Of a DNA stretch of 64,000 nucleotides, positions 20,504 to 42,556 are shown one piece after another. A program made the position numbers and the translations under genes. The number at the start of each line of letters is the position of its first letter. The first letter of the stretch is position 1. Origin of the DNA: Dimorphilus gyrociliatus (taxonomy: Eukaryota; Animalia; Annelida). Under the pieces are notes generated by a model that made no database searches, was not told where the DNA came from, and saw only the letters and a list, made by a program, of their open reading frames with translations. The stretch lies in contig CAJFCJ010000050.1 of assembly GCA_904063045.1 (NCBI GenBank), positions 1 to 64,000 of the forward strand, in the 5' to 3' direction.

Positions 20504-22369
20504 NAGCAAATTTCCAATCTCCATACATTGTTTTTCATTTGAAATACACCAAAATAAATTAAGATTCTTCAAAGTATTTGATGAATTTTTGAGTCCCTTG
20601 AAAATGCTCAATATACCATTACCCATCTCTCTATTCCAAGATAGATTTAATGTTTCTATTCCAGAAAAATATTCTAGCATATTTCCAATCGTATTACTTT
20701 GTGCTTCATTTAATACACAGTCCTGTAAATGAAGATTCTTCAAAGTCTTTGCTGACTCTTTGAGTCCCTTGAAAATACTCAATATACCATCACCCATCTC
20801 TTTATTCCTACATAGGTCTATTGTTTCTATTTGGGAGAAATGCTGCAAGCAATTTCCAAGCATAATACCGTTGTACAACTTTGGTTATATTTTACATGCT
20901 TGAACTCTATTATTTTATGCAACATATACATGTACATCTTAAAACCTACGCAAGAAAATGCTATAACATTGGCCAAACATAAGTCTGATTAGTCAGCTTG
21001 AAGGTTCATCTTTAATTACCAATAAAGGTTTGGCCAAGTTATAATTTAATTAACTTGCCTAGGGTGTGGCCAAGTTATAATTCAATTAACCTTCCTAAAT
21101 GTTGAACCTTGTAACATCCTGTTACTAAAGATAAATATGAACTACACATTTCGGCAACTGTAAAGTGATGATTGGATGTCAGAGACAAACCTCAAAGTAT
21201 ATAAATCCTCATTATTCTCATTTGGCATGCAGCTTCCATCTGGACCCAAGGACCTGGGAAAATCATCTGGAAACAACCTCCACTGGAACCATCCATCTAC
21301 TCCTCAACATTGGAAGACAGTTTGGTAATTTGGCAACCTGCTATTACAAACTATCTACTCTGCTATTGAACTCTCATATTGTTACTTGCTTAAGTATTAT
21401 TATTGCGAATAAACCATTTTAATTTAAACATTTGTTTAAAGGTTCGAGTAGAACCAGTATTGTTATAACTTGCAAACGCATAGATTTTGCCAGCAAGAGC
21501 AGTACACCGTGCTCTTTCTTTAAATCACACCTACATAAATCAATATTCTTTAGAGTATTTGTCGACGTTTGAAGTCCCTCAAAAATTGTTGATATTCCTT
21601 TACCAATATGTGTATTCCAGGAGAGATTTATTGTTTCTAATTTGGAACAATGGCCTATTAAATCTCCAATTGTTTTACTTTGGTTTTCATCTAAGTTACA
21701 ATCTTTTAAATCAAGATTCTTCAAAGTCTCTGATGAGCTTTTAAGTGCTGCAAAAACATCCTGTAATCTATTATTAACTTCCTCCAAATTACATTTCTTC
21801 AAGTTCGAATTACTTTTACAAGTCATATCTCTTCCAGACATTTGACTTTCTTTTTCTGGCTCATTTTTACTGGCTATTTTTCTAAGTATCTCAAACTCAT
21901 CTTGTAATTCTTTCATTGCCTTTTTTTCACGTTCATTAATTTTGCTTATGATATCGGTTTTACAGTCATCTTCTTCACACAGAATACTATTTAACTTTTC
22001 TTTATGTTGTTTAAATTTTTCCATTGAAAATACTCTACAATTCTCATGCTTGTTATCCAAACATAAAGCACATAGATTTTCAATATTGTGTGTTAAACAA
22101 TACATATTCACAGGCTCCCTGTGATTTTCACATTGATTTTTGCTGTTTTGTAGATATTGATTAGACTTATTATTTCTATTTTCGATTTCTATCCCTTGTC
22201 TGAATTCTGAACAATTGGTATAATCCTTGTTATCTAGTAAATGTTGAACATATCTAAAACAGCATGTTTGTCGATTAGGAAATATTGTTGCACACTTTCC
22301 AATAAAAGATTCTGAGTTCTTTTCACATTCTAATTTATCTTCACTGGTGGCATGTTTATTGGCATCCAT
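20504..22369 (-). pseudogene. TRIM-like degenerate RING / B-box2 / coiled-coil / RNI-type LRR gene, split by a solo LTR and 3'-truncated
   Basis: B-box CENHREPVNMYCLTHNIENLCALCLDNKHENC; LRRs (LKNLDLKDCNL, LETINLSWN). Removing the LTR and one TSD restores DLKKEHG-IMLGNCLQHF in frame. Confidence 0.85.
20872..21506 (+). mobile_element. Solo LTR A with 4-bp TSD CCGT
   Basis: 635 bp TGTACA..AGTACA; CCGT at 20868-20871 and 21507-21510; no difference from 5645-6279 in the stretches compared. Confidence 0.96.
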
Positions 22370-22628
22370 TTTGAAAGTGAACAAATGCAAATACGTCAGT
22401 TAAAATACTTTTGATAGGAACATTTAAGGCTGTTTTCATTGTGGAACACTAACCAGTTTATCAATATTAAGATCCTGAAATTTACTAATAATCATAACAA
22501 TAAATTTGAAGCTTTTTACCAACATTACACAAAAGCTAAAAATACATTAGCTAAAGCACCTTTGGACAAAATGTTCCCGAATCAGAATATTTATATATCA
22601 TTTTTTCAATGCCTTGTCAAACTATTAA

Positions 22629-24079: not shown

Positions 24080-24700
24080 ATGGTTTTTGATGAAAAAGAT
24101 GAGTTGAACAATTCAGTGGTATCAGATATGGCTATAGATTATCATCTTCACAATGTCAAAAAATATGATAATATACTGTTAAAAGAAAAATTATTATGTT
24201 CAATTCTGAATAAATCTTCTTTGGAATTGAAAGAGATGAAAAAGTTGATAAGGCATTTGGAACATTTCCCACATTTTTTGGCTTTTTCGATATATCACCT
24301 CAAAATTATTATAATGAATTTTTTCATCTAATCTTAATAAAAGAACAAATTCACATAATTGCAAATTTCTTTATGTCATGTAGAAGATTATATTCTATTG
24401 ACTTAAGTGGAAATAAAGAAATTCGATCATGCATTCAAAATATTCTTAAAATTATATGCATGAGTGATTGCAAGTTGAATGAGGAACAGTACCATATTTT
24501 GGGTAATTTTTTAAAAGAATGTCCTCACATTTCAACCCTGATTTTAGACAATAACACCAATATGGGTAATGGTTTTAAAGCCATTTGCGATTGTTTTAAA
24601 ACAATCACTTGAACCCTGATGTTTTTTATCATTACAAAACTGCAATCTTAATTCTCAGCAACTGGATTGGTTAGATGATTTGAAAAGAGATAAATCTAAT
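24080..24700 (+). pseudogene. RNI-type LRR gene remnant
   Basis: CRRLYSIDLSGNKEI..CMSDCKLNEEQ..LGNFLKECPHISTLILDNNTNMGNGFKAICD matches the local 57-aa LRR consensus; interrupted by stops and frameshifts. Confidence 0.7.
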
Positions 24701-27819: not shown

Positions 27820-28333
27820 ATATTAGATAGAATATTACAAGTATCTTATCTCAGAGGTGATAAAAGTTATATATTGCTGTATATATTGTACATATTTCTC
27901 ATTGTCACTTGAAATATTCGATGAAGAGAATAAGAGGAATTACCAAAAAAAAATTTTAAACATTCTAGCTATTCCTTGACAGGAAGTAAAAACTTTATGA
28001 TTTATGATTAAAAAAGTATATCATAAAATGGTTTATTCCGTAGTTAAGTTTACAATGAGAGACTGTAAGATTAATTATTTTACGGCTTCAGATCATTTAA
28101 AAAAAACCATTTATGATTGTTTAAGCAATAAAAAATTCCATTATAAAAGATTATCAAAAAAAGTTATTCACAGAATAACATTATGGAAAAATTTTCGGCT
28201 GTTTAGCTGCAATGAACATAGCATATCAATAAAAATTGTTAAGTTACAGTTATCATTGTATTCAAAGAAAAACATGAAGCCTGAAGTCCATCACATAAAT
28301 CTCCAAAACCAAATGACATACTCCAGTTATTAG
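27820..28333 (+). pseudogene. Paralogue of the 5' region of the 33366 LRR gene, cut off by an LTR
   Basis: TTATGATTTATGATT..GTATATCATAAAA and upstream TATCTTATCTCA match 32900-33300; VYHKMVY aligns with VYHKKVY; LTR A-like sequence starts at about 28362. Confidence 0.5.
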
Positions 28334-28361
28334 AAAAATTGACAGATTCAATCCAACAGGA

Positions 28362-28825
28362 GTATTCAACAAGTAGCAATATGAGAGTTCAATAGCAGAG
28401 TATATAGTTCGTAAAGGCAGGTTGCCAAATTACCAAACTGTCTTCCAATGTTGAGGAGTAAATGGATGGCTCCATTGGAGGTTGTTTCCAGGTTATCTTC
28501 CCAGATCCTTGGGTCGAGATAGGAGATGCTTGGAATGAAAATAGTGAGGATTTATATACTTTGAGGTTTGCCTCTGATATCCAATCATCACTTTACAGTT
28601 ACTGAACAGTGTAGTTCATATTTATGTTTAGTAACAGGATATTACAAGGTTGAACATTTAGGAAGGTTAATTGAATTATAACTTGACTAAACTTACCTTA
28701 ACTGGTAATTAAAGATGACTAATCAGACCTGTGTTTGGCCAATGTTGTATCATTTTCTTGTGTAGGTTTATATAAGTTGCATAAAGTAATATAGTTCAAG
28801 CATAAAATATAACCGAGGCTGTACA
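28362..28825 (-). repeat. Diverged LTR A copy
   Basis: Collinear with 5760-6279 with substitutions and deletions; ends in GCTGTACA. Confidence 0.88.
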
Positions 28826-29897
28826 ATTCTATACCCTAATAAAGTATATTTTTTGCAAAATTGATAAACAGATGAAATAAATTGATGTTTGTTTGATTAG
28901 TCTGGTTCTGATTCTGATTCATTTTATTAATATATTAAAAACATTTTATGTTTTTATTCCATCAAAATGATCAATATTTGATTGATGGTGTCCAGTATGA
29001 AAATAAATCTTTTGTGTGATTTTATATTTACTAATACTAGAACTTTTATTGCTATCATCTGAAGTATCTGTATTAAGTGAACAAAACAGAGGTTGTCACC
29101 TGTGTTTTGTGTTGACATGCTGCAGTAAGAATGTAAGTGAAAGAGAAAGAAAGAGTGTGTGTCATGTGTTGAGGGTAGGCAACTCAGGTTCACATCATTG
29201 TCTGTCAGTTTCAGTTGATATCACATCACAGGTGAGGTCAAGTTAATTATTTTGTAAATATGACATCACAAACAGGCTAGAAGAATCAAAACCTAATTGG
29301 AAGACATCGACAGACACAAACATTTATTTTATATCTTTGTTAAATTTTTCTCAGAAAACATAGTGGCAATTTTGACTCTAACAGTCAACTATTTGAGAGA
29401 TGTGAAAAAGTGAAGTTTGTTAATTCAGCTCATTGACACAAATGATAATGGACAAGAAATTTGCCAAAATTACAGCGACTTCAGGTCAATATAAACAGTT
29501 TGACCTTTACCTTGTCCAAGTGTCATGGCCGCCAAGTAGTATTGTAATTTTTTTTAATTGAAACTCTTGGATGGGTATCAGTCATCTGATCAGAATACAC
29601 TACTCTATTTATGCAGTATAAATAGATTAATAACAATCAGAAGACAAAGTAAAATCCTCTTTAGATGAAAGACAGTCTCGTATTACCGGAAAGAGCAGAA
29701 TTTGATAATTTATGCCACCTGAAACGATGATGTGACCGATTTAGGCAACGATCCTCCAGTTATATATGTCTAATTGTTTTTTTTCCATTTGTCATAGTAG
29801 CAAGAATCTCATCAGAAATTCAAATATTAAAACACTCTTCGCGACTTGTTTTAGTAGTACCTGTGAATCTGTATTTAGTTGTGTCCAAAATATTAAA

Positions 29898-30479
29898 ATG
29901 GCGGAAGCAGAAATCAACAACGTGTGTCCTTCTAATCAGCAAGAATGGAGAGAGTGGTTAGAAAGTAATCATAAGACAAAAGATGCAATATGGCTTGTTT
30001 TCTATAAGAAAAAATCTTCAATGCCAAATCTAACGTGGAGTGAGGCTGTTGACGAAGCTCTTTGCTTTGGTTGGATTGACAGTGTGAAAAAATCCATCGA
30101 TTCGGAGAAATATAAACAATATTTTAGCAAACGAAAATCAAAGAGCACATGGTCAAGAATCAACAAAGAAAAAGTTGAAAAATTGACCAAAGATGGTCTA
30201 ATGTCAGAGGCTGGCTTAAAGATTGTACGGATAGCTATGGAGAATGGATCATGGACAACCTTGGACGAAGTAGAAAATCTTAATATTCCAGATGATTTGG
30301 AGAAAGAGTTTAATAAAAGACCAGGATCAAAGGATTATTTTGTTAGTTTGAGCAGATCAGTTAGAAAAGGTATGCTATACTGGATTGTTGTTGCAAAACG
30401 ACCAGAAACCCGATACAAACGTGTTAGTGAAATAGCAGAAAATGCTGGTCAAAAACAGAAACCAAAGCAATTCAGATAA
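29898..30479 (+). CDS. ydeI: YdeI/OmpD-associated (OmdA, bacteriocin-protection) family protein, bacterial-type, 193 aa, intronless
   Basis: EWREWLESNH..WLVFYKK..LTWSEAVDEALCFGWIDS..FSKRKSKSTWSRINKEKV..L..GLM..G; C-terminal IPDDL..F..LSRSVRK.ML.WI..AKRPETR.KR are the family signatures as I recall them; AAAATGG start context. Confidence 0.92.
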   Translation: MAEAEINNVCPSNQQEWREWLESNHKTKDAIWLVFYKKKSSMPNLTWSEAVDEALCFGWIDSVKKSIDSEKYKQYFSKRKSKSTWSRINKEKVEKLTKDGLMSEAGLKIVRIAMENGSWTTLDEVENLNIPDDLEKEFNKRPGSKDYFVSLSRSVRKGMLYWIVVAKRPETRYKRVSEIAENAGQKQKPKQFR

Positions 30480-32649
30480 GATGATAACATACCTACAAGA
30501 TTTTTTATTCCAGTCCTGAAATATTAGATTTTTGAATACTTAACAAAACATTCCATTGGATACAAGTGATCCATCTAATGATAGAAATCAGAAAATAGTA
30601 TTCAATGGCTGGGAATGCTTCAAAGGTTGCCTACAGGCGAAATAAAGGAGAATATTGAAGACAATGTTCCATGGAGACGATGTTCATGTAAAGCAGAGGG
30701 AAAAGATGCTGGATGAGGACCAGAAACATAAGAAGTGTGTGCAGGGAACGTTTATTTAAATTCTTCCACAACAGGTCACGTAATAGGAATGAGTAGTGTA
30801 CATGTCCGTAAGAGAGGTCTATCAGACACTGTTAACAATTCACGCGAAAATTTCTGTGATTAATTAGATTAATATGTAAATCCATAACGAGGATTTTGGG
30901 ACATGAGATAAGAATTGTTTACAACAAACGCGATCAATGGTTGGCTGAGCAACACCAAGTTCTAGCTGTCTCGTGATTTTTTAAGAGGACATATCTCTGG
31001 CTACGCTTTTATTCTATTATAAAAGTTTCAATTGTAGCTTATTGCAATGTCTGTAATACTGATTCACTTTTCTCAAACTCCATTATTCTCTAACCCAGAA
31101 GCAACTCTTTATCTATGCATATCTTTCAGCATAATTATAACATATGTGCAGATTATATATCATGTCCGGAAATCACTTTCATTGCTCATCTCCAACATTC
31201 ATTCTATTTTGAATCACTTACGTGTCTCACTCAGACCATTCTTACATTTGTAATTGAGTGTTGATTATTTAGGTGATGAATCAATAAATCCTTCTTTAGA
31301 AATTTTAACAGTTGGAACACTGAAAAAATGGAGTACATATCTTCTAATCGTGTGAGAGAGAAAGGTTGAAAAATATGTTGTAATATTTTGGCAAATATAT
31401 TCATCCTTTTCAAAGAATTTTTTCTTGCTGATTCTCTAAAAACAGTGCATATTTTGATCAAGTGTCAATTTCTGACATAATAGAACATATAATAGAATTA
31501 TATAATAATTGTTTATTGAATATAGCAGAAAATGGTCAAAAACCTATGTGTATATAGGGAGTGAAGCTGTACCCAGATAAAACCATACCAGAGTTAAACA
31601 GTACTCATAATGAGGTTAAAATGTACCCTGTTGTTAACTACAACAGACAAAGTTATAAACCAAGAAAATAAGAACTATAATTTAAAAGTCACTAATTATA
31701 AAAATCAAAATAGAATTTAGAGAGAAAATGTACCTCCACTACATACAGAATCTCTTTCTTAAATTATGCTATCAATACCATAAACTGTGCCGACAGGTTC
31801 AATATTATCTTGATAGTCATCAAAAAGATCACAATATGAAAACAGATTTTTAGCATTGAAAATATCTATGGCTTTTGTGATTGAATGATGCTCAAAAACA
31901 CAGCGATTAACTTGTCTTTGACAATGAGCGTTTGAATACATTCTTTCCACAGGCTTTTGAGATAGTTTAGCTTTGTTAAACTTATAATTTGCAATTTTTC
32001 TCTCTTCTGACTTTTAAAACCAAAGTCGCGTGATAGTCTAAAAAATAAGAAAAAGCTTATAAAAGTAGAAAACAATTGGATAGAATTTTAATAATTTGCT
32101 CATTGGAAATATTATCAAATAGCAATTCATTTTTCTTCTTCCATAAATTAAAAAGAAAACCAAATATTTAAACTTATTTAAGTTCTTTCTATACTAATCA
32201 CTTGGATTGGAATGATTTTTTTACTGTTTTTTCGGATTTTCTAAGTCATTTTTTTGAGATTTTATTATTAGATTTAGGCCATTTATTCAGACTTGACTAT
32301 TAAGCCACTTTGAAGAATTGGATCATGATATAAGGAGCCTGATATTGTGTCGGAATTGTGCAATAATTTCATTGATTGAGAAAAAAATTGTTGACCTACT
32401 TTTGTACAGTTTGTGAACAAATTTAAAGTGTAAATACAACACTAGTTACCAAGTTACCACACTAGCATCCAACTCTTTAGTTTCCTCAAAGTGACATCAA
32501 GTCCGGTGACTGAAAATGATATAAACTCAAGTCACCCTACCCTCAACACATGATACACACTCACTCTTCGTTCATATATATTGATATTGATTCAAATTGA
32601 CACATAACATAGAAAACAAACATATTTTGTTTATATACTTTGGGAATTA

Positions 32650-32730
32650 GCCTCTGATATCCAATCATCACTTTACAGCTAGAGAAGAGTCCAGTTCATA
32701 TTTATCTTTAATAACAGGATCTTACGAGGT
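32650..32730 (-). repeat. Small LTR A-related fragment
   Basis: GCCTCTGATATCCAATCATCACTTTACAG..AGTTCATATTTATCTTTA..ACAGGAT matches LTR A. Confidence 0.7.
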
Positions 32731-33365
32731 CCAGGATATAGTGGAAAACAATGCAACAAATATACTGGGCTGCCTTTGTATATATCTATCTATTTAAAAT
32801 AACTTTAAAAAACCAATTTAAGTTAGCTCTTTTGAGCTGTATTTTCCATCTTTTATTTTTATTAATATTTCAAGTATGTCAATATAAAACTTATATTATA
32901 TTACAAGAATGCCAATGATTTTATCTTATCTCATGCGTAATAAATTGAAAATATATATATATATATATATCTTCCTCGGTGTCACTCACAAAATAGTTGA
33001 TCAAGAGGTGTTAACCAAAACATATTTATCGTTGTAATTTCTAAAACACCGGTTATTGAATTACGTAAGTATCAATTTTACAGATAAATAAAAAAATATC
33101 TAGTTTGTAATTCATTTATTCTATTTTGCTCAAAACACTTTTATGGTTTCCTCCAAGAGAAACATTATATCAATTTCTTTTTAGGAAGTAAATTCTTTAT
33201 GATTTATGATTTTCAAATGTATATCATAAAAAGGTATATTTAGAAGATAAGCATCATAGGTTTATTTTATATAACTCGTCAGATAAATTTTTAAAAGTTA
33301 TTTATTATTTCCAAAATATACATAAATACAAAATAAAAAAAAATATTTAAACACAGTATTCCAGT

Positions 33366-36300
33366 ATGATAACTCCAGAAGATATTTGGCCTATCATCTG
33401 TAATGGGCTTAGTAAATCAGCAAAAACTTTAAAAGAAATTAATTTTAAGAGACTTAGGCTTAATTATGAGAAGAGTATTTCTATTATGAAATTATTAAAT
33501 AAATGTACTCAAATTGAAAAGATAAGCATTATTGATAATAGAGACTTCGAAAAAGGATTAGCAAATATTTGCAAAGGATTAAATAATTCATCACAGCATC
33601 TAAAAGAAATTACATTTCAAAATTGTAGCCTTGATAACGCTGCTTGTGTATCAATTAAGAAGTTACTAATTAAATGCTTTCAAATTGAACTACTCAATAT
33701 ACATGAAAACAATCTGAGGACATCAGGATTTTTAGACATCTGCCTTGGACTTTGCAACTCCATAAATACTTTAAAGTCTCTTTTTTTAACATTTATATTG
33801 GTGGACAAAAGAGTGATTAGATGTTTTGAGAAATTTTTAAACAAGTGTACTCGAATTGAAAATATTCAAATCAATAATTATTCAACTTGTACACCTGAGC
33901 TGTTTACATTATGCTCTTCATTGGAAACATCTGCAAAAACACTAAAAGAACTTCATTTCAATACTGCAGTTTTCAATCCAGAAAATTCACATTGTATTGA
34001 TAATCTTATAAGAAAATGTGAAAATATTGAAAGAATACATATAAATGTTGATTTTGAAGAAGAATTTCAACCGTTGTCTACATTTTCTGCTCTGGAAATA
34101 TCAGCCAATAAACTGAAAGAACTAAATATTATATGCAAATTCAATTTAGAAATGCTTATCCAATTTGAAGAACTTTTAAACAACTGTTCAAAACTGGAAA
34201 GTGTAAGCTTTCCATCAATTAGAAATGTAGTCAATGATGAATTTTTCACTATTTGCCAGGGTTTGCAGAAGTCATGTAAAAGTTTAAAAAGATTAGATTT
34301 TAGTCATTGCACTTTAACTTCAAATTGCTTTAAAAATATTGGACAGTTTTTAAAATTTTGTTCAAATATTGAAATTATTATTCTAAACAATGATTTCTAT
34401 ACAAGAAATGATGTAACAAATATTTGCAATGGTCTTGAATATTCTTCCAATTCATTGAAAGTTTTAAATTTCAATGGAGGCAATACTGAGGAGAGATCAT
34501 GGATACCTATATTAAGTCTGCTAATCAAATGCTCAAATAGACCAAAAATGATATACACTTTAAATTTATATGAATTGTTGTCAGAATTAACTGATCAAAT
34601 GACTATATCTTCAAATACTATAAAAGAAATCAATTTGAATGCATATCATATTGGTAATGATATAGTTATAGATATGGCAACAATTATACAGCAACATACA
34701 AGAATAGAATCAGTAAGATTAGTTGGTATAGATAATGAAAATACATTATCTATGGTTTGCAGTGCTTTGGAATGGTCATGCAAACATATTAAAAGTATTC
34801 ATATTTCACAATCAGATTGGAATTATAGCTCATGGAATAGAGTTTGCAAGTTTTTGAACAAATGTAAAATTGAGTCAATAACTTTTGTGCAAAATAATAA
34901 TATAGAGAATCAAATATCAAGTATTTGGCATGGATTACAGAATTCTGTATCTACTTTAAAATCTATAGAATTCAATTGCTATGGCTTAGACAATCATGAC
35001 TATAATAAATTAGGAACATTTTTAGAGAAATGTTTCAACATTGAAACAATAGATCTATCAAGGAGCGCTCCTATTCCAGATGATTCCTTTTCAAAAATTA
35101 TTGAAGCCTTGGAAAAATCATCAAAAACCTTGAAAAATTTCAATTTCAGTTTTTGTGACATTAATGATGAAGTAGGCAAAACTATTAGTAATCTATTGGT
35201 GAAGTGTTCAAATATTGAAACAGTAAATCTAAGTTATAATAGTTCTTTGAGAAGTTCATTGAAAAATATTTGTATTGAGCTGGCAAGATCATCTATTAGT
35301 TTAAAAGAAATTAATTTTTCACAATGTAATATCATGGATGAAACTTGCAATAGCCTAACACAACTATTGAGTAAATGTTATAAACTTGAAAAAGTAACAT
35401 TATTTTCAAATTGGGATTTGAATGGTGAACTAATCAATATATGCCAAGAATTGGAAAAATCTTCCAATACATTAAAGGAGATTTGTTTGGCAAACTGTGG
35501 TTTGGATAACAGTCAATTAATTACTTTTGGAAATCTTTTAAAAAAGTGTAGAAAACTTGAAAGTATCAATATAAGTCAAAATAATATATCTGCGGAAGTT
35601 TGTATTGAATTTGAAAATCTATCAAAAACTTTGAAAGAAATAGACATTAGTTATTGTGATATGGGTGAAAAACTTTGGATAAATGTCAAGAACATGTTGG
35701 AAATCTTTGATAATATTCCAATTATTCATCTGTATGGAAATTCAATTGATGATTATATACCTTTTGTTTTTAAAGGAAAAGTCAATGATAAAGAAATTAT
35801 ATTTAGTTGTAAACTCTGTTTATTATCTGAATTATCACCAATTATTGGAAATATTATATTAAATTCATATAGAATTCTTACAGTTCATCTTGGTGAAACA
35901 TTCCAAAATATGTCTGGCCTTTCCGATATTTTTCTACTTTTGTCCAAAAGTAAAAATAGTTTGGTAAGTGTCAACTTTAGTTCTTGTAATCTTGATATCA
36001 GAATGTGTCAATATATTGGGAATTTTTTGCTTTCATCTGGCTGTATTAAATCTGTCTATTTTTCTAATAACCCAAATTTGTCATATGGTTTTGGATATCT
36101 ATGTGATGGACTTCAAATTTCACGTTTTTCTTTAAGACAAATTATATTTTCTAATTGTGACTTAACAAACAATTCATGTGTATGTCTTGTAGATCTTTTA
36201 ATGAACTGTCAGAATATTAAAAAAATAGATCTCAGTTTAAATGAAAATATGGGAAATGAAATTATAAATGTTTTTGAACAACTTCAAAATTCATCTTGCT

Positions 36301-36482
36301 CTATGGAAGAGATAAATTTAGAATACTGCAAATTAAAGAAGAATGTTTGTGAAAGCCTCAACAATCTTTTAATTAAATGCCCTTATCTTCAATCTGTAAG
36401 ACTTAAGGGTAATGAAAATCTGATGAAGGATATTAATATTAAAGATCAGTTATATACAAACAATAGGTTCTGTTTATCATAG
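33366..36482 (+). CDS. Large RNI-like (about 57-aa paired) leucine-rich-repeat protein exon, 1038 aa
   Basis: Uninterrupted ORF with roughly 17 paired units C..IE.I.L..N...ICxGL..S...LKEI.F..C.L; probably the 3' exon of a longer gene (coding-like segment at 33190-33300). Confidence 0.9.
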   Translation: MITPEDIWPIICNGLSKSAKTLKEINFKRLRLNYEKSISIMKLLNKCTQIEKISIIDNRDFEKGLANICKGLNNSSQHLKEITFQNCSLDNAACVSIKKLLIKCFQIELLNIHENNLRTSGFLDICLGLCNSINTLKSLFLTFILVDKRVIRCFEKFLNKCTRIENIQINNYSTCTPELFTLCSSLETSAKTLKELHFNTAVFNPENSHCIDNLIRKCENIERIHINVDFEEEFQPLSTFSALEISANKLKELNIICKFNLEMLIQFEELLNNCSKLESVSFPSIRNVVNDEFFTICQGLQKSCKSLKRLDFSHCTLTSNCFKNIGQFLKFCSNIEIIILNNDFYTRNDVTNICNGLEYSSNSLKVLNFNGGNTEERSWIPILSLLIKCSNRPKMIYTLNLYELLSELTDQMTISSNTIKEINLNAYHIGNDIVIDMATIIQQHTRIESVRLVGIDNENTLSMVCSALEWSCKHIKSIHISQSDWNYSSWNRVCKFLNKCKIESITFVQNNNIENQISSIWHGLQNSVSTLKSIEFNCYGLDNHDYNKLGTFLEKCFNIETIDLSRSAPIPDDSFSKIIEALEKSSKTLKNFNFSFCDINDEVGKTISNLLVKCSNIETVNLSYNSSLRSSLKNICIELARSSISLKEINFSQCNIMDETCNSLTQLLSKCYKLEKVTLFSNWDLNGELINICQELEKSSNTLKEICLANCGLDNSQLITFGNLLKKCRKLESINISQNNISAEVCIEFENLSKTLKEIDISYCDMGEKLWINVKNMLEIFDNIPIIHLYGNSIDDYIPFVFKGKVNDKEIIFSCKLCLLSELSPIIGNIILNSYRILTVHLGETFQNMSGLSDIFLLLSKSKNSLVSVNFSSCNLDIRMCQYIGNFLLSSGCIKSVYFSNNPNLSYGFGYLCDGLQISRFSLRQIIFSNCDLTNNSCVCLVDLLMNCQNIKKIDLSLNENMGNEIINVFEQLQNSSCSMEEINLEYCKLKKNVCESLNNLLIKCPYLQSVRLKGNENLMKDINIKDQLYTNNRFCLS

Positions 36483-41202: not shown

Positions 41203-42556
41203 CTGATTGTTAAAAAAGATTTGTTATTTTGTTTTAATATTAATATTTTAAACTTTTCACTTTTCACTCCAAAACCACAAATATGTGTTTCCTGATTTTT
41301 GTGCCTAAGAACAAAATAATCATATATTATGTTGTTCTATACCAAATGTTTTAAATTTCAAGAGAAATTTCTAAAAGTACAAAAAAAACACTCTGAAATA
41401 AAAACTTTTATAAACTTTTGGCATACAGACTCCTTTTAGATGATTTTTATTTATGAAGTTGTAACCACATGACTGGTTTGGTCTATATAAACCATTTGTT
41501 GTTCATGTAAAATTTTAACCACTACAATCCCATACAATATCATTTTGTAATTTGTTGGGACAATACAATATTTCAGAATTGAAATTCTTTTGAGTAGTGC
41601 TAACTTTATTGGGAATTGTAGTTACTTCATTATTATTATTATTCTCACCACATTGGAACTACGATTTTATTGCAAAACCGCCCTTTACAACACTTTCAAT
41701 GAAATTTCCATCTGTATGATTAGGCTGAAATTTTAGCAAGAAATTTAAATATAATTGGTTTTAAAATAATTTCTCTTGTTGAAAAACAATATGTTACATA
41801 TCAGAGTTAAACTAATGATACAGATACACAAATTGAGAAAAGTTGCCTTCATTTTCACTTTCTCAAGCTGAAATAAGAAGACTCCTGAAAAATGTGTCTA
41901 TTATGGGAAAGAATTTGAATAACAAGGAGCGAATAATATATACACAAGTTTTTGACAGACTTACCCTTTGATAATGTATGTTGACAGAAAGTAACTACTA
42001 TTTGCAAATGTTAATCTATTACAGCTATATGTTATTGAATTTTGGATTTTGAGATTTTTTAAACGATCTGTATTGAAAATACTTTGTAAAATTTTCAGTT
42101 TAGATATTAAGATATACTGAATAACTACTTTGAATTGATAATAATAATTATTAATAAGTAGAAATTAATATCTTTTAAAAAAGATATCAAAACATTCGTT
42201 TTTCTTTTATAAAATCCAGTTTTAGTAATTATACCTCGAAAAAAGAGGTTCGTTAAAAATGAGTCACCATTTGCTAATAAATAAAATAGTGAATCAACTT
42301 AAATTTTCAATATTGTTGAACAAACAGAGCTTTTGTATCAAGCATGAAGAATAGCTGCCACATTTGCTGATTTAATATTTATATATTGTTCTGAATGGCA
42401 TTTATACTTTCTTTTATGCCTTTCAGAACAATATATTAATATAGTATGATGCTATTGGAAAAAATCTGAATAAAAATTAATGCATTAGAAGTGTATTAAA
42501 TTATCAATCATTTTAACTCGAACTGAGATCTTTAGCTTTCAAAATTTCAACTGATT

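Follow-up and report, generated by a model that had tools for sequence, protein, structure and literature searches.

A horizontally acquired OmdA-family gene of Bacteroidota type, apparently held by selection, in an LRR gene cluster of the annelid Dimorphilus gyrociliatus

The window analyzed here, a stretch of 64,000 nucleotides of Dimorphilus gyrociliatus contig CAJFCJ010000050.1, carries on its plus strand an intact, intronless coding sequence (CDS) of 193 amino acids plus stop codon at positions 29898 to 30479. The original prediction of a complete ORF without introns or indels was confirmed by the ORF listing and by the alignment with homologs, with zero stops, frameshifts, or introns in the CDS. 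The open frame listed at 29766-30479 (+) corresponds to 237 amino acids and the complete frame, opening at 29745, to 244 amino acids; the 193-residue product starts at the ATG at 29898, which aligns with residue 1 of the bacterial homologs. Use of an alternative ATG at 29766 would lengthen the product by 44 residues, and there is no ATG between approximately 29795 and 29898. Based on the ORF listing and the position of the homolog start, the in-frame open stretch upstream of the CDS (29745-29897, +) is probably its 5' UTR. It includes a TATA-like TATATA at 29761-29766 (+), which from its sequence alone might be read as part of a promoter. The start context, attaaaATGG, with A at -3 and G at +4, is Kozak-like as had been proposed, and we give little weight to the accompanying argument that a Shine-Dalgarno sequence is missing. 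A scan for sigma-70 promoters and terminators found no excess over shuffled sequences, and an Rfam search of the region from 26 to 34 kb gave no match. Downstream, the letters AATAAA at 30641-30646 (+), 162 nt past the stop codon, constitute a candidate poly(A) signal, beyond which RNA-like contigs extend to approximately 31.5 kb. The GC3 of the worm gene is 0.31, compared with 0.20 to 0.31 in host ORFs and 0.22 to 0.51 in bacterial orthologs. Because the donors are AT-rich too, composition gives neither a date nor an origin.

The surroundings of the gene are those of host DNA. Copies and repeats were searched for in the genome assembly (77.9 Mb, 349 contigs), the published version of which was built from PacBio long reads and has about 350 scaffolds totaling about 78 Mb (PMC7854359). 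A high-copy interspersed host repeat at 28291-28830, with more than 40 copies of 76 to 83% identity on many contigs and a word depth of up to 125,743 in sequencing run X1, lies 1.1 kb upstream of the gene, and other repeats lie 1.2 to 2.2 kb downstream. A dispersed host repeat at 29071-29317 has relatives at C5:3239666-3239828 and C49:126076-126274, and its core at 29147-29179 is the inverted counterpart of 32536-32568 (33 nt, 91% complementary). The dispersed host repeats on the downstream side, at 32491-32741, are made up of an inverted partner of 29071-29233 followed by high-copy repeat, with 32647-32741 as a partial direct copy of the repeat at 28291-28830.

LRR genes and their remains occupy much of the same neighborhood. 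An LRR remnant is present upstream at 24316-24618 (+), and an RNI-type LRR gene remnant at 28251-28352 (-) was identified by tblastn from its 65% identity to residues 894 to 927 of the product of the gene at 33366-36482, a transcript contig of which, from run X2, aligns at 28251-28352 too. This gene (33366-36482, +), the nearest intact host gene downstream, encodes a 1038-amino acid LRR protein (LRR_6 according to Pfam) and has a 5' UTR intron at 33065-33356 with a GT..AG joint in X2. The original prediction of animal TE and LRR remnants on both sides of the gene was thus correct for the host repeats but not for the LRR remnants, which are found upstream only, the nearest downstream LRR gene being intact. 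Surrounding ORFs are animal-type, with matches to 7tm_1, LRR_6/LRR_1, FLYWCH, SUEL lectin, and collagen. When both flanks were compared with more than 70 bacterial loci using tblastx and blastn, we observed no match and no co-transferred bacterial DNA. The gene is therefore without bacterial neighbors and embedded in animal DNA within an LRR gene cluster, as had been proposed.

Bacteroidota often associate with marine invertebrates, and the locus could in principle reflect an assembly chimera or contamination by an associated bacterium of this phylum. In run X1, a single contig covers 28785-32676 with zero differences and at a depth of 136, compared with 97 in a neighboring unique contig. X1 is possibly the same data as the assembly, however, so that only X2, which comes from a separate study of 2017 with a different organism label, is independent. 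In X2, two contigs with a 30-nt overlap, 28785-29718 and 29689-31535, also have zero differences, and the second of these joins the ORF to nonbacterial sequence on both sides (209 nt upstream, 1,056 nt downstream). A 2024 run labeled as the same species, X6, contains almost none of the locus, but it is without the unique host flanks too and is therefore uninformative on the gene. Further evidence against a chimera is that the flanks carry host repeats and no bacterial similarity, that a decayed copy of the gene resides in different host DNA, and that the nearest bacterial gene has only 73% nucleotide identity to the worm gene. We consider a chimera highly improbable. The linkage in X2 contigs, the host repeats and LRR remnant in the flanks, and the decayed copy show that this is genuine horizontal transfer rather than contamination.

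The encoded protein is a member of the YdeI/OmpD-associated family and resembles Bacteroidota proteins, in agreement with the original prediction. The Pfam domain OmdA (PF13376) matches residues 128 to 184 (E 4.7e-18; 65.4 bits versus a cutoff of 25.6) over profile positions 2 to 58 of 60, and a repeat search on the genome gave 64.1 bits. OmdA was the sole Pfam match of the worm protein in our local copy of Pfam, which seemingly lacks the PF28474 model; all close homologs, which align from worm residue 1, carry both PF28474 (DUF8412) and PF13376. Neither NCBIfam nor PADLOC yielded a match. In a collection of 5.8 billion proteins, we found 7,946 homologs at E <= 0.001. The best 120 of these 7,946 share 58 to 69% identity with the worm protein at a query coverage of 95 to 100% and are 188 to 225 amino acids long, and no homolog in the collection exceeds 69% identity. 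All named proteins among the best 120 of 7,946 are from Bacteroidota, and none of these 120 is eukaryotic. Bacteroidota proteins with PF28474 and PF13376, for example, from Reichenbachiella, Aureivirga, Plebeiibacterium, and Zobellia, share the length (190-193 amino acids) and very probably the two-domain layout, and are alternatively annotated as "YdeI, YjbR/CyaY-like superfamily." A homolog is present in 71 of 151 sampled Bacteroidota genomes, with the close subfamily in 12, and in only 8 of 81 sampled Spirochaetota, with the close subfamily in 1. The closest bacterial homologs are situated in dense gene contexts together with AraC, SDR, and ECF sigma genes. Around 69 bacterial copies there was no recurring neighbor family, the sole recurring cluster consisting of antisense ORFs within the gene itself. 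Without a conserved bacterial partner gene, the gene probably works alone, which would make its transfer easy.

As suggested for checking the original prediction, we placed the protein in a maximum-likelihood tree. In a careful tree of 45 rows, which omits most unnamed top matches, near-duplicates, and the long-branch rows L060, L063, L065, L074, and L075, the worm protein is nested within a Bacteroidota subfamily of 39 rows with a support of 97/85. Its end branch (0.20) is not longer than those of the bacterial proteins (median 0.22). In a quick tree of 99 rows, it falls within a clade of 46 rows (SH-aLRT 97). The worm gene is placed in a polytomy of the 45-row tree, and the donor is thus resolved to the level of phylum, but no further. 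We infer that the worm gene was captured from Bacteroidota. The alternative is vertical or ancient eukaryotic inheritance, or a transfer from animal to bacteria. Eukaryotic homologs might rank below the best 120 of 7,946, and there is a member of the same Pfam family in the fungus Verticillium dahliae, although it was reported to have been acquired from bacteria (PMC6430987). The recipient in that case is a fungus and not an animal, and the donor may differ. Thousands of homologs exist in bacteria, and roughly every second sampled Bacteroidota genome has one; the worm sequence is nested in a single subfamily with an ordinary branch length and has no homolog above 69% identity, and the worm gene is intronless while neighboring genes are spliced. 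Vertical inheritance or a reverse transfer is hardly credible in the face of these observations.

The worm protein retains all 30 of the invariant columns of the family, 59 of 60 columns that are at least 95% conserved, and 67 of 69 that are at least 90% conserved; alignment A2, in which the window protein is included, contains 38 invariant columns. Among the invariant residues kept are W17, R18, W20, H25, C56-F-G-W-I-D61, Q74, R79, and N116-G-S-W119, and the altered conserved positions are K114M and I176V. Because every family-invariant residue is kept, the activity of the worm protein is most likely that of the bacterial proteins. An AF2 model (pLDDT 89.7) contains a three-stranded alpha/beta domain and seven helices, very probably corresponding to an N-terminal alpha/beta domain of the DUF8412 type, followed by a C-terminal helical OmdA domain. 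In the ESM Atlas, this model matches only its own family, in clusters that are 100% PF28474 (TM by query 0.81 and 0.62). Searches of the PDB by sequence and by profile gave no match at E <= 1 and E <= 10, and the best Foldseek result against the PDB had an E of 0.03 and a TM of about 0.3. A wide VIA-align comparison reached at best a Z of 7.2 (noise guide 8) for generic alpha/beta sandwiches, namely the C-terminal part of Trm14, Alba/Sac10b, and SirA/TusA-like proteins; these concern residues 1 to 80 only, so that the helical half was barely probed. The N terminus (MAEAEINNV...) has no hydrophobic signal, and the worm product is soluble, with neither a signal peptide nor a membrane segment. 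Apart from K114M, I176V, and the possible 44-residue N-terminal extension if ATG 29766 is used, what sets the worm gene apart from its Bacteroidota relatives is that it resides in animal DNA, has a Kozak-like start and flanking host repeats, and lacks bacterial neighbors.

The family is annotated as "bacteriocin protection," and the original prediction had considered co-option for defense against microbial toxins conceivable on this basis. Through a confusion of names, the label stems from the unrelated Salmonella enterica YdeI/OmdA, a porin-associated periplasmic BOF protein of about 15 kDa with an OB fold, which is homologous to YgiW and SipA (PMC6370654). Salmonella YdeI/OmdA, with E. coli YgiW and V. 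cholerae SipA, acts in antimicrobial-peptide resistance. By contrast, the worm protein has 193 amino acids, no signal peptide, and a predicted alpha/beta plus helical structure. A BOF protein of the Salmonella type, with an OB-fold barrel of about 130 amino acids and a signal peptide, is ruled out by the AF2 model, the N terminus, and the presence of Pfam OmdA only. Because nothing beyond the name and the PF13376 text is common to the two, no function can be transferred from the Salmonella protein, and the proposed defense role is not supported. A co-opted factor against microbial toxins or antimicrobial peptides would explain why the gene lies among LRR genes that have duplicated locally and that the genome paper tied to immunity, and would agree with the Pfam family name. 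As a weak hint, a family member is among the most strongly induced proteins of L. plantarum under patulin (PMC12846167). However, OmdA is the sole Pfam match and PADLOC finds nothing, and PF13376 occurs in only 4 of 14 control genomes (B. subtilis, T. thermophilus, B. thetaiotaomicron, and L. lactis). Moreover, foreign DNA commonly inserts into regions that recombine and are rich in repeats, and adjacency there does not count as evidence of a shared function. We thus regard a defense role as quite unlikely.

Elsewhere in the genome, a second, decayed copy survives as a fragment at C82:41873-42052. It covers codons 2 to 75 with 78.8% nucleotide identity to the window gene (K2P 0.255, approximately 21% nucleotide divergence), is interrupted by a TAA stop, lacks 42 bp through a deletion, and has flanks devoid of homology. 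At the amino acid level, the fragment is 63% identical to the window gene and at most 57% identical to bacterial proteins, and it shares with the window gene A4, S23, and T27, which are rare in bacteria. By these modest margins, the fragment appears to be a paralog of the window gene. At 18 of the 22 codons with nonsynonymous differences between gene and fragment, including all 9 sites that are at least 83% conserved, it is the gene that has the bacterial majority residue. The pairwise ratio of nonsynonymous to synonymous differences is 22:8 and near neutral overall, so that the signal of selection resides in this polarization by bacterial residues, over 60 codons only. In simulations of neutral drift at 0.10 to 0.12 substitutions per site, start codon and open frame survived in 0.5 to 1.1% of copies, with indels uncounted. 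By this indirect evidence, purifying selection appears to hold the window copy. According to the original prediction, the intactness of the gene implied either purifying selection or recent arrival. The former is borne out by the polarized changes (18:4) and the neutral survival of about 1%, whereas recent arrival is unlikely because the paralogous fragment has already diverged by approximately 21% in nucleotides. A decayed paralog as an internal neutral yardstick is unusual among claims of single-gene horizontal transfer.

Contig data from two studies point to transcription. A single contig of high depth in RNA-like run X2, at 29689-31535, marks a probable transcribed unit that includes the CDS, and its depth is 199, compared with 55 upstream and about 5 downstream. 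In run X3, the corresponding contig (29689-31452) has a depth of 49, compared with 14 upstream and 0 downstream. We take X2 to behave as RNA because one of its contigs shows a GT..AG skip of 292 nt (33064->33357). These runs are Logan contigs, none recorded as RNA, and their cover carries neither strand information nor transcription start or poly(A) ends. The gene is probably transcribed, as judged by this patchy RNA-like cover centered on it in X2 and X3. Both runs share a contig break at 29689-29718 that a spliced antisense transcript might explain; part of the cover would then not be sense mRNA. The 30-mers at the loose ends of X2 at 31738 and 32431 were not found in the 64-kb window. It is conceivable that the gene is integrated but functionless, a neutral insert that by chance has yet to decay and whose RNA cover stems from transcription of the LRR cluster, either reading through or running antisense. 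A minus-strand 3' splice site would be consistent with the break at 29689-29718, and a functionless insert would also agree with cover lacking strand and start, with the near-neutral 22:8 ratio, and with repeat-rich surroundings containing decayed LRR pieces. Yet the fragment, at a K2P of 0.255, has already suffered a deletion and a stop, in contrast to the gene with its open frame and 67 of 69 highly conserved columns retained. Polarized changes fall on the fragment side (18:4 overall, 9:0 at strongly conserved sites), neutral simulations keep the frame open in about 1% of copies, and the end branch is not longer than bacterial ones. A functionless insert is therefore unlikely.

We consider it highly probable that a Bacteroidota gene entered the worm germ line and was duplicated, and that one copy decayed while the other was selected and is most likely transcribed. 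After its arrival, the gene would have undergone at least one duplication, with subsequent decay of the copy on C82. The window copy would have been kept by purifying selection. It now stands alone, without introns, in repeat-rich DNA between LRR genes that have duplicated locally, and a host-type promoter most likely drives its transcription. Within this account, the ORF, its membership in the family, its embedding in host DNA, its nesting in Bacteroidota, and its conservation are observed, and we infer the direction and the age of the transfer, the strand and start of transcription, and the function. With low confidence, we propose that the protein acts in the cytosol, where a surface of conserved Trp, Cys, His, and Asp residues would bind or modify a small molecule, perhaps in connection with chemical or xenobiotic stress. 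A role as a periplasmic peptide-resistance factor is not favored. There is also a modest outside chance that the gene was domesticated within an LRR immune-gene cluster undergoing local expansion and serves to detect or neutralize a small molecule of bacterial origin, as the first animal member of its family.

Bacterium-to-animal transfer of this kind is already known. A literature search found no report of an OmdA/YdeI family member in an animal, the Dinophiliformia genome paper did not examine horizontal gene transfer (PMC7854359), and Dimorphilus is not mentioned in the accessible portion of a compendium of metazoan horizontal gene transfer (PMC13342648). The gene described here is a well-supported addition, in Dinophiliformia, to the bacterial genes fixed in animal germ lines. 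Our analysis also corrects a misleading annotation, as the "bacteriocin protection" label is unfit for inferring the function of this family. Since the protein is nearly unchanged after its move from a bacterium into the animal cytosol, it must act without bacterial partners, and this narrows the hypotheses for an uncharacterized family with members in roughly half of the Bacteroidota genomes sampled. If confirmed, the gene would extend a large bacterial family, one without known function or solved structure, to animals for the first time. If it was indeed domesticated, a single selected gene in a eukaryotic cytosol would provide a handle on the function of the DUF8412-OmdA family.

The original prediction of a YdeI/OmpD-associated ORF with a Kozak-like start at positions 29898-30479 (+) was borne out. 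A single open frame of 237 aa occupies 29766-30479 (+); its ATG at 29898, which gives a protein of 193 aa, aligns with residue 1 of the bacterial homologues, and in the start context, read from the sequence as attaaaATGG, position -3 is A and position +4 is G. Pfam OmdA (PF13376) is matched by the product with an E value of 4.7e-18 and a score of 65.4 bits (cut-off 25.6). A word-index protein search returned 7,946 homologues at E<=0.001, the best 120 of which share 58-69% identity with the worm protein at a query coverage of 95-100%, measure 188-225 aa and contain both PF13376 and PF28474. The named sequences among these best 120 are all from Bacteroidota, including Bacteroidales, Reichenbachiella, Cytophagales, Aureivirga, Plebeiibacterium, Zobellia, Flavobacterium and Runella, among others. 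NCBIfam and PADLOC gave no match for the worm protein. The worm gene belongs to the DUF8412-OmdA family by every testable criterion.

The evidence for integration of this gene in host DNA is solid. In sequencing run X1 (organism label A), a single Logan contig covers 28785-32676 with no differences at a depth of 136, next to a neighboring unique contig of depth 97; X1 is not independent of the assembly because it may be its source data. In run X2, which differs from X1 in study, year and organism label, two contigs (28785-29718 and 29689-31535) also show no differences and are linked through a 30-nt graph overlap. Moreover, the host genome holds a decayed second copy on another contig, C82, at 41873-42052 (L002:1500-1680), which spans codons 2-75 at 78.8% nucleotide identity to the worm gene (K2P 0.255), carries a 42-bp deletion and a TAA stop, and loses homology to the window abruptly at both ends. 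At the amino acid level, this fragment is 63% identical to the worm gene compared to at most 57% to bacteria, and it shares with the worm gene the residues A4, S23 and T27, which are rare in bacteria (1%, 3% and 9%, respectively). Bacterial contamination or an assembly chimera is thus very unlikely, given that gene and flanks are joined in the contigs of X1 and X2, that a decayed copy lies on C82, and that the closest bacterial gene has only 73% nucleotide identity to the worm gene. A 2024 run labeled as the same species, X6, contains next to nothing of the locus in 273 Mb of contigs, with repeat k-mers as the only matches; it is uninformative on the worm gene because the unique host flanks are missing from it as well, and it is probably another library type or a different lineage carrying the same label.

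The absence of bacterial neighbors that had been claimed also holds, with neither flank resembling any of approximately 70 homologue-bearing bacterial loci by tblastx or blastn. Around the gene, promoter and terminator patterns of bacterial type show no enrichment, and an Rfam search gave no matches. GC content averages 29% across the window, of which the large ORFs match 7tm_1 (rhodopsin-type GPCR), LRR_6/LRR_1, FLYWCH, SUEL lectin and collagen; gypsy-type retroelement ORFs are present, and the ORF at 21419-22387 (-) matches no Pfam family at E<=0.001. The window has LRR-gene remnants at 24316-24618 (+) and at 28251-28352 (-), as well as an intact LRR gene of 1038 aa that starts at the ATG at 33366. 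Direct repeats (27842-28048 and 32922-33251) point to tandem duplication of the regions that precede LRR units. The D. gyrociliatus genome (earlier name Dinophilus gyrociliatus), assembled from PacBio reads into about 350 scaffolds totaling about 78 Mb, has few expanded gene families, which are locally duplicated immune genes (PMC7854359).

Within the host genome, 29318-31688 is unique sequence. Upstream of it, 28291-28830 is a high-copy interspersed repeat without Rfam match, with more than 40 diverged copies on many contigs of the assembly; its word depth peaks at about 125,000 in X1 and runs into the thousands in the RNA-like libraries X2 and X3. Members of a different dispersed repeat family (kin, for example, at 3239666-3239828 of host contig C5) form an inverted pair at 29071-29317 and 32491-32637, followed at 32647-32741 by a partial copy of the high-copy element of 28291-28830. 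Both arms of a 33-nt inverted repeat with 91% complementarity (29147-29179 and 32536-32568) are part of this dispersed family and flank the worm gene 3.4 kb apart, reflecting either a transposon-like carrier or coincidence.

Concerning the origin of the gene, our careful maximum-likelihood tree (LG+C20+F+G4, 45 rows) places the worm protein within a 39-row subfamily (support 97/85), in a polytomy with Reichenbachiella, Bacteroidales, Marinilabiliales and unnamed metagenomic sequences, on an end branch of 0.20 compared to a median of 0.22. A quick tree of 99 rows placed it in a 46-row clade with an SH-aLRT of 97. The three closest homologues are on bacterial contigs where AraC, SDR and ECF-sigma genes are densely packed. 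In evenly sampled genomes, homologues occur in 71 of 151 Bacteroidota and the close subfamily in 12 of 151; among 81 Spirochaetota genomes, homologues are found in eight and the close type in only one. Because the gene tree does not track Bacteroidota orders, identification of the donor stops at the level of phylum. The GC3 of the worm gene (0.31) is intermediate between host ORFs (0.20-0.31) and bacterial orthologues (mean 0.35, range 0.22-0.51), and composition thus provides no date. The copy in a Spirochaetaceae MAG (L018; OZ245056.1, 2001-2567) is of Bacteroidota type: it shares 61% identity with the worm protein and nests among Flavobacteriales and Marinilabiliales. The remaining sampled Spirochaetota copies are at most 42% identical. 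The MAG copy results either from inter-phylum transfer or from a binning error.

Evidence for selection on the worm gene is solid. The protein retains all 30 columns that are invariant across 120 bacterial homologues, 59 of 60 columns with at least 95% conservation and 67 of 69 with at least 90%, the deviations being K114M and I176V; an alignment of the family that includes the worm protein has 38 invariant columns. Over 60 shared codons, the worm gene and the C82 fragment differ at eight synonymous and 22 non-synonymous sites. An even split would be expected if both copies had drifted equally, yet the worm gene has the commoner bacterial residue at 18 of the 22, and the bacterial residue at all nine sites conserved to at least 83% (C10, W20, S48, E53, A54, C56, D61, E70 and Q74). 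When neutral drift of 0.10-0.12 substitutions per site was simulated with host-like composition, ignoring indels, start codon and open frame survived in only 0.5-1.1% of copies. These results indicate purifying selection on the worm gene since the duplication, with the caveats that the comparison covers 60 codons and that the fragment is assigned as a paralog by modest margins.

Expression of the worm gene is probable. Runs were compared as assembled contigs, none is recorded as RNA, and "RNA-like" is a judgment from cover and splicing. X2 is RNA-like, with patchy cover and one contig that omits 33065-33356, a 292-nt 5'UTR intron with GT..AG ends directly upstream of the LRR gene ATG. In X3, a run of the X1 study, cover is limited to 28983-31452 of the 5.9 kb compared. 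The contig from 29689 to 31535 (X2) or 31452 (X3) has approximately 3.5 times the depth of the upstream contig (199 vs 55 and 49 vs 14, respectively), and 29689 to approximately 31.5 kb is probably a transcribed unit with the worm CDS inside. The sequence would be in keeping with a host-type mRNA for the 193-aa protein: TATATA occurs at 29761-29766, no ATG lies between about 29795 and 29898, and AATAAA follows at 30641-30646. Both RNA-like runs break at the 30-mer 29689-29718, where the DNA-like X1 is continuous. Read on the minus strand, 29719-29733 (...cgtttcag) is a good 3' splice site, and an antisense spliced transcript is therefore possible, with an exon from 29718 down to about 28785 overlapping the region upstream of the worm gene. 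The genome paper (PMC7854359) reports no trans-splicing in D. gyrociliatus.

An AlphaFold2 model of the worm protein (42 sequences, pLDDT 89.7) consists of an alpha/beta domain at the N-terminus (helices 14-24, 47-56 and 90-98; strands 30-36, 59-66 and 71-78) and seven helices after it. No relative was found in the PDB by sequence or by profile. With this model, the best Foldseek E value was 0.03, and VIA-align gave generic two-layer alpha/beta folds over residues 1-80 with Z of at most 7.2, inside the tool's stated noise; in the ESM Atlas, its own family was the only return (TM 0.81). The sequence contains no signal peptide or hydrophobic segment. No neighbor family recurs around 69 bacterial copies, which argues that the gene works alone. 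Tentatively, the worm protein may be cytosolic and self-sufficient, and may bind or modify a small molecule through invariant Trp, Arg, His, Cys and Asp residues. Two weak hints on function are the proximity of some close bacterial copies to AraC and SDR genes, and an OmdA-family member among the proteins most strongly induced in L. plantarum under patulin (PMC12846167).

Co-option for defence, which the original prediction had considered conceivable from the "bacteriocin protection" label, is without basis in homology. The Salmonella YdeI/OmdA behind the "bacteriocin protection, OmpD-associated" name is a periplasmic bacterial OB-fold (BOF) protein of ~15 kDa, homologous to YgiW and SipA (PMC6370654), whereas the worm protein is not a BOF/OmdA member. 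Among 14 control genomes, PF13376 is found in four only (B. subtilis, T. thermophilus, B. thetaiotaomicron and L. lactis). The PF13376 text describes the Salmonella protein, which appears unrelated to the proteins that the model matches, and "bacteriocin protection" annotations derived from this text, including those in HGT lists, are probably wrong.

HGT was not among the analyses of the genome paper (PMC7854359). The bacterial genes listed as acquired by the fungus Verticillium dahliae include the PF13376 family (PMC6430987), likewise of bacterial origin in a eukaryote. Our literature search found no report of the DUF8412-OmdA family in an animal. Movement of single intronless genes from bacteria to animals is a well-known kind of HGT, of which the D. 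gyrociliatus gene is a further case.
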